DNA of 63,670 bases, counting the filler, from Bigelowiella natans CCMP2755 (lineage: Eukaryota; Protista; Cercozoa): assembly GCA_000320545.1 (NCBI GenBank). It is 4 parts of 4 records of this genome, joined end to end, with 100 filler letters (N's around TTAATTAATTAA, not from the genome) between each part and the next. Parts side by side here need not be neighbours in the genome. Positions count along the whole stretch, not along the records: positions 15,212 to 35,879 come from ADNK01002242.1; 3 more parts are not named here. One strand, 5' to 3'. Made by a program: the position numbers and the translations under genes. This document shows positions 23,316 to 27,807 of the stretch, piece after piece. Below the pieces are notes generated by a model. The model was not told the DNA's origin, did no database searches, and worked only from the letters and a program-made list of their open reading frames with translations. The stretch's first letter is position 1. Each line of letters begins with the position of its first letter.

Positions 23316-26300
23316 ATGGCGGTGGCATTCCTGTTGCTTTGCTCAGTTACCTTCTTCCATATTGAGGTTGGATTTTCAGCCGAAGCCGATTCCTCCATCC
23401 ATGTTTATGATTTCGTTTCGCCTAAGAACAAGGGATAGGGGTAGGTCAGGGTTTGAAATACTTTTTTTTTTTCGAATCGTCTTGAAATACAACAATGTAG
23501 TTGAATTTTGGCCACTTGTTGTGTAAGGCACGTGGAGGTCGGCCCATCCGCCAAACAACGAAAACTGCAGCCAGAAGAAGTAATCGCTACAGACCTAACA
23601 GGATTACCTGTCATGCCTCTTACGAATGGAGAAGAAGGGCCACGGCGATCTTCAGTATGAGGAGCTTTTCTTCTCAGAATTATCGGCGGATTGAAGGTAA
23701 GCTGTGCTGGTATTTTACTGCTCTATGCATCAGCAATTGAAGTTGTCTAACATAGAAACATTTACCTCGCCACCCTTCTATTCGTTCAAATTATGTGCGT
23801 ACTCTCCACATAAGCTCGATTTATCATCGCAGGCACTTCACTGCTCACAGGCAGCGCCATCGAAACACCGACGGAAATAAGCGCACGAATGAGGGAGGAT
23901 TTGGGAGGGGGGGAGGAGGGGGGAAATGTCCTTCCAGAGGGCGATGAGACGCTTATGCATTATCTTGATAATGCGGAACGCTACAAGAAACCAGAAGCTG
24001 TTTTAGGTTGCTTCGACTTTAAAAGTCGCAGCGCTTTAGTAGCTCATGCACATGCATATATATATATATATATATATATATATGATCATACCCCCTTTCC
24101 TTGCCAATTTTTCCATTGTCTTAAAAAATTCATGTGGTTTTACCAATTGCCGTTTATTCTCCATTGCAGACGCCGTGGATCGGTACTATGCCACGGATAA
24201 TGCGAATGTCCATCGGTTCTGAAGCACACACACGCGCGCGCGCGCGAGCGCACACAATTACATAAAATACAATATATATATATATATATATATATATATA
24301 TATATTTAATGTTTACCTAGACAGGAGAAATATGCGTTGTAGGCGCTCTCCTAATACAGTTTATATTTGTAGAGGCGCCCATGAGCTCGCTGCAAGGGCG
24401 ACCGCCGGATATGAAGGCGCTAGGTTAAAGGTCGTATCACCCAAAACGATTCGGTCGCATCGTCTCCTTTGCTCTCAACTATAGATGGGACAAATCGAGG
24501 CATTATAGCTTGACGAGTTGCATACAAGCCCTGCCCATATATATATATATATATATATATATATAATAGAGCTTGCTTACTCTTCTTCATAGGTAGCACA
24601 GCTAATCGGGGGTGACGACCGAGAAGTGGTGTACACGAAAAGTGCCACGGTGAGGAATGTTATATATATATATATATATATATATATATATATATAATCC
24701 GCGCCGCTTATTCGTGCTATTGGTAATGAGTGATATTTAAGGAGCTACTAGCGAAGAACTAGCATTATGATGAGTCCTCAAAACCCTGTGCAAGATAATA
24801 TTATGGCACACGATCCGCTTTGCTTGACTCATTCGAGTATTCGCTACTCAGCGTAATTCTTGAGAGTATGAGGCCCCATTGAATGGTTATTATATGTTAT
24901 TTTGTGTTAATAGGAAGGAATCAACCTCCTAGCAAATACATGGGGAGACTCGAATATAAAGGTGCATATCTCTATGTGTATATATGAGTATCAATCAATA
25001 TATTTATATATATTGGTAAAAAAACATTAATGGGTAAACACTTTTGCAGATTTGGTCTTGTTTTGAATATTTTGCGAGACAGCCACGCTCAACTTCATAC
25101 ATATATATATATATATAAACATATATAAAATATACATATATATATATATATATATATATATATGAGTTAAATGTGACGACAGAGCGGTGACGAGATTATC
25201 CTTTCCGTGATGGAGGACCACAGGTGTCTTGATGGCAACATGATGATGATGATGATGATGATGATGATGACTTCGTAAATAAGTCATTGCACCCTTTGTA
25301 TTATAAATATGAAATATATCATATTCTGTTTGTATGAAATGGGTGTGCCTCTAAACAGCAACATCATCCCATGGCAACGACTGGCGCAGAGGAAGGGCGC
25401 GACAATAAAATATGTGCGGTTGAATGACGATTTCGCCTACGATTTGGAGCATTTGAAGTCCCTTCTTTCCGAAAGTAAACAATGCAATTAACACTTACAT
25501 TCTTATGGTGTGTATACTATATGTGTATATATATATATATATATATATATATATATATGTGCGTGTGTGTGTGTGTGTGTGTGTGTGTGTGTGTTTCATG
25601 TGTTTTTGTGTGTATCTGCGAGTTGGCGTGTGATTGGAATCATCGTTTACTGTGCTGTGCTTCTCGAAAGGAACGAAGCTTGTTGCGACTACGCATGCTT
25701 CAAGCGTCCTAGGTCATTACTACTGCTACCACCATATCAACAACAGTGTCACTCGTTGCGTGTAGCAGCAGCAAGTGCTACTGGGAAGATGATGAGTAAC
25801 AAGGGTGGTGAGGGTGATGGTGACTGTCTGCACTATACAATAAGCAATATATCGAGCGAGTCGAAATGCGGGGCTAGATGGGAACATATATTGGTCTATT
25901 CTCATGTTGATGCCTACCTTATGATGCATTTGTATTTATCTGCGACGATCAAACGATAGGAACGCGGAACCCTGCGGCTGAAGTGGTGAGTACAAAGCTG
26001 TTCTCCGTGAGGAAGAAAGAGTTAATCCCCTGCCGTTCCGTAATTAGGCTGATCTTGCCCACCAAGTCGGTGCTGTTTTTCTCCTTGACGCCTCGCAAAC
26101 GATGGTTCGTCTCTTGTCCATGATTACATGTTGTATGGCAGAAGTGTATAATATAAATATATATATATATATATATATATATAATATTAGAAACAATCGG
26201 CAGGTTTGGTGCGAGAGGAGGGGGGGGGGTAGAGAGTCGTTTGCTTATCGCTAATGGCAATCTGAAGACGTGGATTTTGATTCTACAAATGCTCTTAAAT

Positions 26301-27807
26301 AGGCGCGCGGTCCGTTGAATGTAGACAGCATCGGATGCGATTTCCTTGTAGCATCAGGACACACGATGATGGCACCATATGGAATTGGTGATACGATGCC
26401 CTGTTCCTGTACATTTAAACAGTTACTATATGATTTTTTACATAAGTATAATAGTTATATTCAAGATATATTCATTCGTTCGTTCTACACGTCTGCGTTT
26501 TTAGGCTTTCTTTGGGGAAAATACAAGCTCCTGGATGCAATGAAACCTTGGCAAGGAGGTGTGGACTTGTTATCACACCCACGTTCTCCACCAATGAATA
26601 TTCACAAAATAACGTGTAATTCTTGTTAGGCGGCGAGATGATCGATGAGGTTTTCCTCGAAAAGTCGACGTATGCCCCCCCCCCGGGCCGGTTTGAGGCG
26701 GGAACTCCTTCGATAGCGGAGACGATTGGACTCGGAGCCAGCATCGACATTATAATGGAGACGGGCACGATGAACGTAGGAAGCAGATTTTTTATGAGAG
26801 AAATAAGAAGGCGGCAGTTTTTGTTATCGATTTCAACACATACTCGATAATCTGGATTATCTCACCCACTACTCATCCTATGCAGATTTTGGAAAAGGAA
26901 CTCCGCATCGGAGAAGTGCTGTATAAGGGACTCACGGACATACCCAGCATCACCATGTGAGAGATTATAGTATATCCTAACTCACATGTGCATACACGCT
27001 TATGAATGATTTACACACAAAACGCACACATACAAACATAGAATATAATATATATATATATATATATATATATATCTGTATATGTATGTGTGTGTGTGTG
27101 GTGGTGTGTGTTCGGTGTAGGGAAAAGAAGGTTGATCCTAAATTTGATAATGAATAACACACACAGATTGGGAGGGCCAAAAGAGCGATTAGGAATTGCA
27201 TCGTTTGTATCAGCAAAGCATACCCCGGAAGAAATGCAAAATTTATTAAAAAAGAAAGGTTGCTGCTCACGTAGACATTAGTACACATTATATGCGTCTG
27301 TGTATTGGGTGAGGGCGGGGAGATTAGAGGGAATGCGGAAGAGCACAGCTTCATCGTCAAAAATATATATTACAATCATAGTTGTAAGAATAAAACTCTC
27401 ATTCATCATATAAACAGGCTATCGAATCGGAGCTGGCCTTCACAGCTCCCAGCCACTCCACCAAGTTTTAGGGTAAAATCACTTCCTTGTTTCTGTGTAG
27501 CAAATTCAGGAGAAGCAGTGTGCACCCTTTTGGTTGCAAACTTGACTACTCTCTGGAAGAAAAGCGTTTAAATATCTTATCGAGGCAACATGATTCTTCT
27601 CTTGAGATGTGGCGGTTTTACATCGCCGCGAGCACAACATATGTTATGCCCTTTTATCTCATGGACATGTGCATGCGAGTGACTTTCGCTTTGAAATGTT
27701 TTCCTTTTAGGTATCCCCATGGTTCGAATCGTGTCAGTTTTTCTATGTTTGATACTGAAAATGAAGCAAGAGATTTCATTCAGATTCTTCGTTCATGCAT
27801 GAATTAG
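23316..27807 (+). CDS. sufS-like: SufS-type (group II) cysteine desulfurase homologue with a bipartite plastid-type leader; catalytic residues are replaced (pseudo-enzyme candidate)
   Basis: HYLDNA..KPEAVL|[16 protein letters not shown]|[26 protein letters not shown]|[20 protein letters not shown]|[29 protein letters not shown]|FLWGK..PWQG|[38 protein letters not shown]. Leader: [17 protein letters not shown]|[23 protein letters not shown]... Confidence 0.92.

Follow-up and report, generated by a model that had tools for sequence, protein, structure and literature searches.

A conserved SufS pseudoenzyme in Bigelowiella natans and its probable role as the non-catalytic half of a composite cysteine desulfurase

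Background

A gene of 19 exons in the chlorarachniophyte Bigelowiella natans CCMP2755 (GenBank assembly GCA_000320545.1) encodes a protein of the SufS family of cysteine desulfurases in which the main catalytic residues are replaced; in this work it is named psi-SufS, or psi. The window that was analyzed is a stretch of 63,670 nucleotides (nt) formed by four parts of this genome with filler letters between them; positions 15212-35879 are one contig (ADNK01002242.1, C1495) of the 91.4-Mb genome assembly, and the gene is placed inside this contig. A second SufS-type gene of the same genome, here called cat, carries the intact catalytic residues and has lost other segments that psi has kept. From the comparison of both proteins in several chlorarachniophytes, we propose that psi-SufS probably forms an obligate heterodimer with cat, in which psi would be the non-catalytic half and the single active site would be a composite of both chains.

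Loops and a β-hairpin of SufS serve the active site of the neighbouring subunit, and we follow the assignment of these elements to chains given in the structural reports (PMC10011822, PMC11408855). The dock for SufE is formed by helix α16 (residues 343-353) of one SufS monomer together with the Arg56 loop and the N-terminus of helix α4 (residues 56-67) of the adjacent monomer (PMC11408855). Arg56 in its inward orientation contacts Thr278 and Gly277, and SufE does not activate the R56A or R359A versions of SufS (PMC11507941). In the SufS dimer, each active site is made from both chains. One of them, the own chain, supplies Lys226, which binds pyridoxal 5'-phosphate (PLP), and His123, which stacks on PLP and serves as acid/base for Cys364; it also supplies Arg359, the loop with Cys364, and helix α16, on which SufE docks. 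The neighbour chain supplies the loop of Arg56, the Gly-rich loop together with the β-hairpin, and, presumably, Thr278. Residues of SufS are numbered as in Escherichia coli unless they are given together with their psi-SufS equivalent.

Results

Structure and expression of the psi-SufS gene

The gene model was obtained from a three-frame reading and from public runs laid on positions 23300-27900, and the exons were joined from the joints observed in transcripts (Table 1). After splicing, the exons yield an uninterrupted open reading frame (ORF) of 1485 nt and 494 codons on the plus strand; the 18 introns have a length of 62-272 nt, and each of them shows the GT..AG borders. Most of the exon junctions are directly visible in the transcript contigs of runs X15 and X16, which belong to different studies and contain approximately one third of the words of the stretch, as mRNA should. 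The listed transcript rows do not include the joint of exons 4 and 5, exon 6 is included in the stretch 24432-24913 that the transcript contigs skip, and exon 8 is present as 37 inserted letters at a joint within the X15 and X16 contigs. A previous reading of this DNA from its letters only (from here on, the sequence-only reading) had claimed an uninterrupted multi-exon ORF, and this gene model bears it out.

The string VNPLP...stop at 26021-26047 was considered as a break of the frame and rejected, given that the transcript joints put these positions in intron 11. Read in frame, this 62-nt intron gives RVNPLPFRN-stop, which resembles the SufS motif G-x-x-NP-[LV] of the adjacent upstream exon 11 (TRNPAAEV); the resemblance may be due to chance, or it may be left over from a splice site that shifted or from a small duplication.

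The key codons of psi-SufS show the same letters in the DNA run X2 and in both transcript assemblies, and 14 DNA runs cover 88-94% of the words of the stretch. RNA editing had been raised as a point to be checked in reads and cDNA, and neither the Lys, the Cys nor the His is restored in the transcripts. A single variant is reported, a minor A>C change at position 27451 (3 of 21 raw RNA reads, run X21), which would turn Gln456 into Pro, two residues past Ser454; neither the DNA nor the transcript contigs show it, and either a strain allele or an error could account for it. Three large protein searches did not bring up any B. natans protein for psi-SufS among their best hits, although the JGI model of the paralogue did appear. 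A correct model for this gene may be missing from the public gene catalogue.

Table 1. Coordinates of the psi-SufS gene, its exons and the intron microsatellites (positions of the window; aa, amino acids of psi-SufS)
Feature	Position	Strand	Content
Whole gene	23316..27807	+	ATG at 23316, stop codon ends at 27807
Exon 1, aa 1-17	23316..23366	+	Hydrophobic start, signal-peptide-like
Exon 2, aa 18-74	23528..23696	+	Basic, Ser/Thr-rich, transit-peptide-like; K+R=14 vs D+E=2 in aa 21-75
Exon 3, aa 74-132	23833..24006	+	Acidic linker, then a 15-residue segment in place of canonical YLDSAATSQKP
Exon 4, aa 132-147	24170..24215	+	NANVH-R, α3-α4 loop; His146/Arg147 = E. coli His55/Arg56; canonical throughout
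Exon 5, aa 147-166	24373..24430	+	Start of helix α4
Exon 6, aa 167-185	24593..24649	+	From the gene model
Exon 7, aa 186-201	24914..24961	+	Helix α6, EGINLL; E. coli Glu96 and Asn99 retained
Exon 8, aa 202-215	25183..25223	+	MEDH; Asp213 (GAC 25216-25218) in place of PLP-stacking His123
Exon 9, aa 215-254	25359..25474	+	TIGR01979 positions 121-157, E 1.4e-7
Exon 10, aa 254-268	25671..25712	+	HASSVLG; Ser265 in place of Asn175
Exon 11, aa 268-276	25960..25985	+	From transcript joints
Exon 12, aa 277-295	26048..26104	+	LLDASQTM; Asp200 and Gln203 retained
Exon 13, aa 296-324	26303..26387	+	SGHT; Thr316 (ACG 26363-26365) in place of Schiff-base Lys226
Exon 14, aa 324-342	26505..26558	+	KPWQGG, first part of the Gly-rich loop
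Exon 15, aa 342-390	26630..26775	+	GEMI, β-hairpin, RFEAGTP; Thr367 = E. coli Thr278; all canonical
Exon 16, aa 391-414	26886..26956	+	From transcript joints
Exon 17, aa 414-445	27167..27258	+	Region of helix α16 (SufE-docking helix in E. coli), diverged
Exon 18, aa 445-463	27418..27472	+	GAGLHSS; Gly449/Leu452/Ser454 (AGC 27444-27446) in place of Arg359/His362/Cys364
Exon 19, aa 463-494 and stop	27711..27807	+	RVSFS; Arg470 = E. coli Arg379, retained
(TA)n intron microsatellites	24040-24091, 24220-24316, 24528-24705, 25100-25180, 25510-25600, 26140-26190, 27030-27090

psi-SufS belongs to the SufS family and lacks its catalytic residues

psi-SufS and SufS from E. coli MG1655 are 42.5% identical over 367 amino acids in a local pairwise alignment. 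Six residues of the catalytic site are substituted in psi-SufS: Lys226 by Thr316, Cys364 by Ser454, His123 by Asp213, Arg359 by Gly449, His362 by Leu452, and Asn175 by Ser265; the first of these changes is a single A-to-C replacement (AAG to ACG). The sequence-only reading had noticed that the SufS motifs SGHK, RxGHHCA and EHH read SGHT, GAGLHSS and EDH in this protein, and the alignment confirms that the Thr, Ser and Asp codons occupy the positions of Lys226, Cys364 and His123. It was also right about YLDNAERY, which begins at 23961 in place of YLDxAAT, and about the structural motifs that are kept, given that NANVHRG, PWQGGGEMI, RFEAGTP and RVSF were all found. The residues His55, Arg56, Thr95, Asp200, Gln203, Ser223, His225, Thr278 and Arg379 are retained. 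From these substitutions, psi-SufS alone is predicted to be unable to form a persulfide, because it is devoid of the Schiff-base lysine, the nucleophilic cysteine, His123 and Arg359.

The joined 494-residue translation was used for the alignment, for the tree and for the estimation of nonsynonymous substitutions per site (dN), and the family and fold searches were carried out with single exons and with the orthologues described below. An exon of the psi-SufS contig matches PF00266, and by whole-domain homology the protein has the fold of the class V aminotransferases. Exons 9 and 15, as well as three psi orthologues, have TIGR01979 as their best family, and among the solved structures exon 15 finds its best relative in Arabidopsis NFS2 (E 1.2e-12). 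The hallmarks of the type II enzymes, i.e. Arg56 on the α3-α4 loop, the Gly-rich loop, and the β-hairpin insertion, are canonical in all the psi sequences. Full-length TIGR01979 scores are 414-449 bits for psi (from the orthologues, given that the window protein was scanned as single exons) and 458-461 for cat; both are slightly under the curated cut-off of 475.1, a result that is expected if each family is half degenerate.

A catalytic paralogue with a degenerate neighbour-chain side

A search of the genome with Pfam PF00266 and E. coli SufS revealed one other SufS-type gene, cat, located on the minus strand of contig C255; its gene model has five exons and 535 amino acids, of which residues 74-535 are identical to the JGI Bigna1 protein 147067 (462 amino acids). 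Every own-chain catalytic residue is retained in cat, as can be seen in the motifs MEHH, SGHK and RSGHHCTQPL, so the SufS paralogue that the sequence-only reading suggested to look for is present and has its catalytic residues intact.

The cat set was completed with the catalytic paralogues of other chlorarachniophytes, to a total of five species (P0279-P0283, P0279 being that of B. natans). The Arg56 loop is lost in the five proteins, in which the NANVHRG segment is gone and a shorter, variable stretch is found instead. The Gly-rich loop is degenerate in all of them (e.g. PLNTGAQIF vs PWQGGGEMI), the β-hairpin shows insertions of varying length, and Thr278 is lost in four out of five. Both paralogues are present in B. 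natans, in Norrisiella (same taxon id) and in Chlorarachnion (same JGI sample, 3300017015).

A C-terminal tail (approximately residues 415-462 of P0279) that is absent from the other aligned SufS proteins is conserved in the five cat proteins. It follows the pattern PCPLVST.DP.L.DP.I.RPCT.LWP, with two invariant cysteines, and ends in an acidic stretch; this tail could act as a redox switch or as a sulfur-relay arm.

A default-threshold six-frame Pfam search of the genome for SufE gave no match, because the domain is split by introns; a relaxed Pfam search together with local tblastn located three colinear SufE exons on the minus strand of contig C2085 (around 9955-10664), which include the Cys51-loop motif PGCLSTV and the Arg119 motif TPGRNNG.

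psi orthologues form an old and conserved clade

The orthologues of psi were obtained by an exhaustive protein search with exon 15, followed by a word search from P0002 and by cluster look-ups. Exon 15 had its closest informative matches in P0002, with 81% identity over the exon, and in the fragment P0003, with 77%; another match, P0001, ranked first and was rejected as a psi relative because it is a chimeric fragment of a canonical SufS. Orthologues were found in Chlorarachnion reptans (P0270), Norrisiella sphaerica (P0271) and Lotharella globosa (P0272/P0273), and P0003 is a fragment from MMETSP; their identity is 51-60%, and the block of 28 residues that goes from GGGEMI to RFEAGTP is nearly invariant.

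The conservation of the key residues among relatives was one of the checks proposed for this gene, and it revealed that Cys364 and Arg359 are absent from all the psi orthologues. Across the clade, position 364 is occupied by Glu, Phe, Asp, Ser and Ser. The clade is also distinguished by the motifs YLDxAxxY(K/T)xP vs YLDSAATSQKP and DASQTMAR (DASTTLAR in the fragment) vs DACQSVPH, and by the change of His362 to Phe or Leu. Other replacements are restricted to some of its members: Lys226 to Thr occurs only in B. natans psi and in P0003, which also shares the Ser at position 364 with B. natans, His225 to Glu only in Norrisiella, and His123 to Asp only in B. natans. On this distribution, the pseudoenzyme state (no Cys364, no Arg359) is older than the split of the genera that bear psi, and the own-chain pocket appears to have been drifting since then.

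A profile made from four psi sequences gave 855-904 bits for the three known full-length psi clusters and at most 533 bits for canonical SufS proteins. When this profile was used to score the 8000 candidates with most shared words, no psi protein was recovered outside the chlorarachniophytes or in Amorphochlora. In the tree, the psi and the cat clades were each recovered with a support of 100/100, both inside the cyanobacterial/plastid SufS group, and the tip branches of psi are around two times those of cat.

In the comparisons between genera, psi gave dN values of 0.39-0.47 and cat of 0.25-0.26; psi evolves around 1.6-1.8 times faster. An estimate of dN/dS had been suggested as a check on the sequence-only reading; synonymous sites are saturated between genera by the NG86 and YN00 methods, and no coding sequence from a closer relative was found, so the ratio could not be computed, and what stands from this comparison is that dN is far below the synonymous rate (dS). 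In the C-terminal half, 84 of 209 columns are invariant in psi and 110 in cat. The sequence-only reading considered that selection had kept the fold and the dimer surface and not the chemistry; in agreement with this, psi is expressed, spliced and constrained in its nonsynonymous sites, and its orthologues lack Cys364 and Arg359. Given these results, it is near certain that psi-SufS is an old, selected and conserved pseudoenzyme and not a decaying copy.

Reciprocal losses in psi and cat

The losses in both families were compared at 14 preselected own-chain (cis) and 10 preselected neighbour-chain (trans) sites, where each cell, i.e. a sequence at a given position, was scored as canonical or changed. 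In these cells, which are phylogenetically non-independent, psi shows 45 canonical and 21 changed in cis, and 46 canonical and none changed in trans; cat shows 70 canonical and none changed in cis, and 15 canonical and 35 changed in trans.

The sites were also scanned without preselection, using the 117 columns with near-invariant residues across 26 canonical SufS sequences. Thirteen columns (47, 53-56, 59, 61, 66, 251, 255, 256, 266 and 278) are retained in all psi and lost in at least four of the five cat proteins, and this set matches the neighbour-chain elements almost exactly. The reverse pattern, retained in all cat and lost in nearly all psi, was observed for 19 columns (12, 15, 24, 31, 33, 34, 101, 128, 204, 206, 328, 343, 346, 352, 357, 359, 362, 364 and 385), which include the Cys loop, Arg359 and the α16 dock. 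None of the 117 columns is lost in both families. The suggestion, made from the sequence of psi alone, that this protein could be an inactive subunit of a SufS heterodimer gains support from these reciprocal losses.

N-terminal leaders

The N-termini of psi and cat are alike: a hydrophobic, signal-like segment comes first, and behind it there is a basic stretch rich in Ser and Thr. A signal peptide followed by a basic Ser/Thr-rich transit peptide is the usual leader of proteins directed to complex plastids. From this leader, a plastid location is predicted for psi-SufS, a nuclear-encoded paralogue of the plastid type II desulfurase SufS/NFS2, and the leaders of psi and cat do not tell apart the stroma and the periplastidial space.

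Discussion

Our results are best accounted for if psi-SufS is the non-catalytic half of an obligate cat-psi heterodimer, a reading to which we assign a probability of about 0.6. In terms of the two-chain model of the active site, cat has retained the own-chain set with the neighbour-chain set lost or altered, and psi has retained the neighbour-chain set perfectly, with much of its own-chain set lost. Because the two proteins retain complementary halves, the active site and the SufE dock would each be complete once in a cat-psi dimer, which would have a dead second site and carry one PLP; either homodimer, cat-cat or psi-psi, would be defective at both sites. With odds only slightly better than even, the SufS of chlorarachniophytes would have arrived at this obligate asymmetric heterodimer, with its composite site and SufE dock, by a duplication followed by the reciprocal decay of one half in each copy. 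As a weaker possibility, the two-cysteine tail of cat and the compartment where these proteins reside could link the pair to redox control or to the supply of sulfur in the nucleomorph-containing compartment, whose iron-sulfur (Fe-S) machinery has no known sulfur source (PMC6105332).

Several observations weigh against a cat-psi pair. We infer the physical pairing from the pattern of losses, and the cis/trans counts come from related sequences. psi carries an acidic linker behind its transit peptide and cat does not. The assignment of Thr278 as a cross-dimer residue is presumably correct, from what is known of the CsdB structures, beside its reported contact with Arg56; this residue is retained in one cat orthologue (P0283), and Gly252 is retained in all cat copies. 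The own-chain side of psi has not been erased: Asp200, Ser223, Arg379 and Thr95 are retained wherever they are covered, Gln203 and His225 in four out of five sequences, Lys226 in three out of five, and His123 in all but one of the four sequences that cover it, so in some species the pocket may still bind PLP or another ligand for a use of its own. The sisterhood of psi and cat is a polytomy in the tree; a topology in which both clades are forced to group is worse by 0.98 log-likelihood units (approximately unbiased test, p 0.46), a result that fails to reject their grouping. Finally, in a cat homodimer the two-cysteine tail might take the place of the latch that has been lost.

If psi does not pair with cat, it could be a stand-alone homodimeric protein without enzymatic activity, such as a regulator of plastid Fe-S assembly, a binder of SufE or SufBCD, or a sensor of cysteine or PLP in this pathway. 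A conserved and expressed pseudoenzyme that keeps several residues of the PLP pocket (including Lys226 and His123 in three species) and the dimer-interface residues Glu96 and Asn99 could well play such a role. Nevertheless, this explanation, which we consider unlikely, does not account for the fact that the parts conserved in psi are precisely those lost in cat in every species, with no near-invariant column lost in both; moreover, according to the E. coli model, psi alone would be a poor binder of SufE, given that α16, the primary dock, is diverged.

It is still less probable that the psi clade has acquired a new PLP chemistry that does not need the active-site cysteine. Cys-less NifS-like lyases exist; C-DES from Synechocystis, a cystine C-S lyase, is an active homodimer that, like psi-SufS, is related to NifS/SufS and has no nucleophilic cysteine. 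The retention of Lys226, His123, Asp200 and Gln203 in three orthologues would be compatible with a chemistry of this kind. However, the PLP lysine is intact in C-DES, whereas the window protein has Thr316 at this position and the MMETSP fragment is also devoid of the Schiff-base lysine, and His225 is Glu in Norrisiella. Furthermore, the variety of residues at position 364 looks like drift, and Arg359 is lost in all psi proteins.

That psi is a transcribed pseudogene in decay after a duplication is very improbable. The six substitutions in the catalytic site and the faster dN of psi as compared with cat are what could be expected from it, but the frame runs intact through the 19 exons, its 18 introns are canonical, most of its junctions are spliced in transcript contigs, dN is far below the saturated dS, and orthologues that keep the 28-residue block are present in at least four other lineages; we exclude a decaying pseudogene on the basis of this frame, its expression, the low dN and the conservation of the clade. 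An assembly error, or substitutions reversed by RNA editing, can be set aside even if the change of Lys to Thr needs a single nucleotide, since an independent DNA run and the transcript contigs of two studies agree, 14 DNA runs hold most of the words of the stretch, P0003 has the same Thr and Ser, and the cDNA restores none of the three residues.

psi-SufS shares with E. coli SufS/CsdB and with the plastid NFS2 (CpNifS) of Arabidopsis the fold family, the Arg56 loop, the Gly-rich loop, the β-hairpin, Thr278, and Glu96/Asn99 of helix α6; unlike these proteins, it lacks Lys226, Cys364, His123, Arg359, His362 and Asn175, and its SufE-docking helix has diverged. SufS and NFS2 are homodimers with two equal sites, whereas the chlorarachniophyte paralogues seem to divide the halves of one site between them. 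The nearest precedents in kind would be found outside this family. Serine palmitoyltransferase, a PLP enzyme of fold-type I, is a homodimer in bacteria and a heterodimer in eukaryotes, where the catalytic subunit bears the lysine (LCB2, SPTLC2) and a Lys-less paralogue (LCB1, SPTLC1) contributes to the single active site at the interface. In LCB1/LCB2, as proposed for psi and cat, a Lys-less paralogue stands beside a catalytic one; they differ in that LCB1/LCB2 belongs to another PLP family with another reaction, and in that its heterodimer has been demonstrated experimentally and that of cat and psi is inferred from sequence. In trypanosomatids, the pairs DHSp/DHSc and AdoMetDC/prozyme require a dead or impaired copy for the active hetero-oligomer. 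These pairs would resemble cat and psi in the complementary degeneration of active sites located at an interface, although their folds and pathways are unrelated and they occur in a different eukaryotic lineage.

SufS is one of the sulfur-mobilising enzymes that have been studied most and, to our knowledge, it is a symmetric homodimer in every system known to us or found described. Neither a dead, Cys-less plastid SufS nor a heteromeric SufS was found described in our search of the literature; surveys of SUF components in algae give only presence or absence for B. natans (PMC8003979), and SufS is not mentioned in a study that deals with the Fe-S assembly of complex plastids (PMC6105332). If the proposal of a cat-psi heterodimer is correct, it would be the first heteromeric cysteine desulfurase built from paralogues, a textbook example of complementary degeneration at an interface site, and a case of pseudoenzyme evolution in which subfunctionalization occurred inside a single active site. 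It would also represent a natural dissection of the SufS active site into own-chain and neighbour-chain halves, and would indicate that one site per dimer is sufficient in vivo; the debates on half-sites behaviour, on the communication across the dimer, and on the Arg56 loop and the β-latch rest on mutants. The proposal is also relevant to the way in which algae that carry secondary green plastids rebuilt the Fe-S assembly of this organelle. Automated annotation is likely to miscall or miss psi, because the SufS scores of both families (for psi, those of the orthologues) are under the cut-off and psi is absent among the B. natans proteins recovered in the three protein searches.

Other features of the locus and of the genome

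A large gene is located upstream of psi-SufS on the plus strand (15229-21700), with long exons that are richer in GC. One of these exons (17952-18539) matches Laminin_G_3, a concanavalin-like lectin domain, with an E value of 3.7e-13, and no Pfam family matched the remaining long exons.

Six further genes of class V aminotransferases were detected in the genome, on contigs C1606, C1861, C2450, C2898, C2459 and C3481. By eye, that of C1606 looks like the mitochondrial NFS1/IscS, that of C1861 like MOCOS, and that of C3481 like a group I NifS or selenocysteine lyase; the others look more distant.

Most introns of psi-SufS carry (TA)n or (GT)n microsatellites, and in many of them there is a (TA)n run (Table 1), often beside (GT)n or (GC)n, and intron 8 also includes an (ATG)n run at around 25240-25270. 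The contig assemblies of the runs break at these intron microsatellites.

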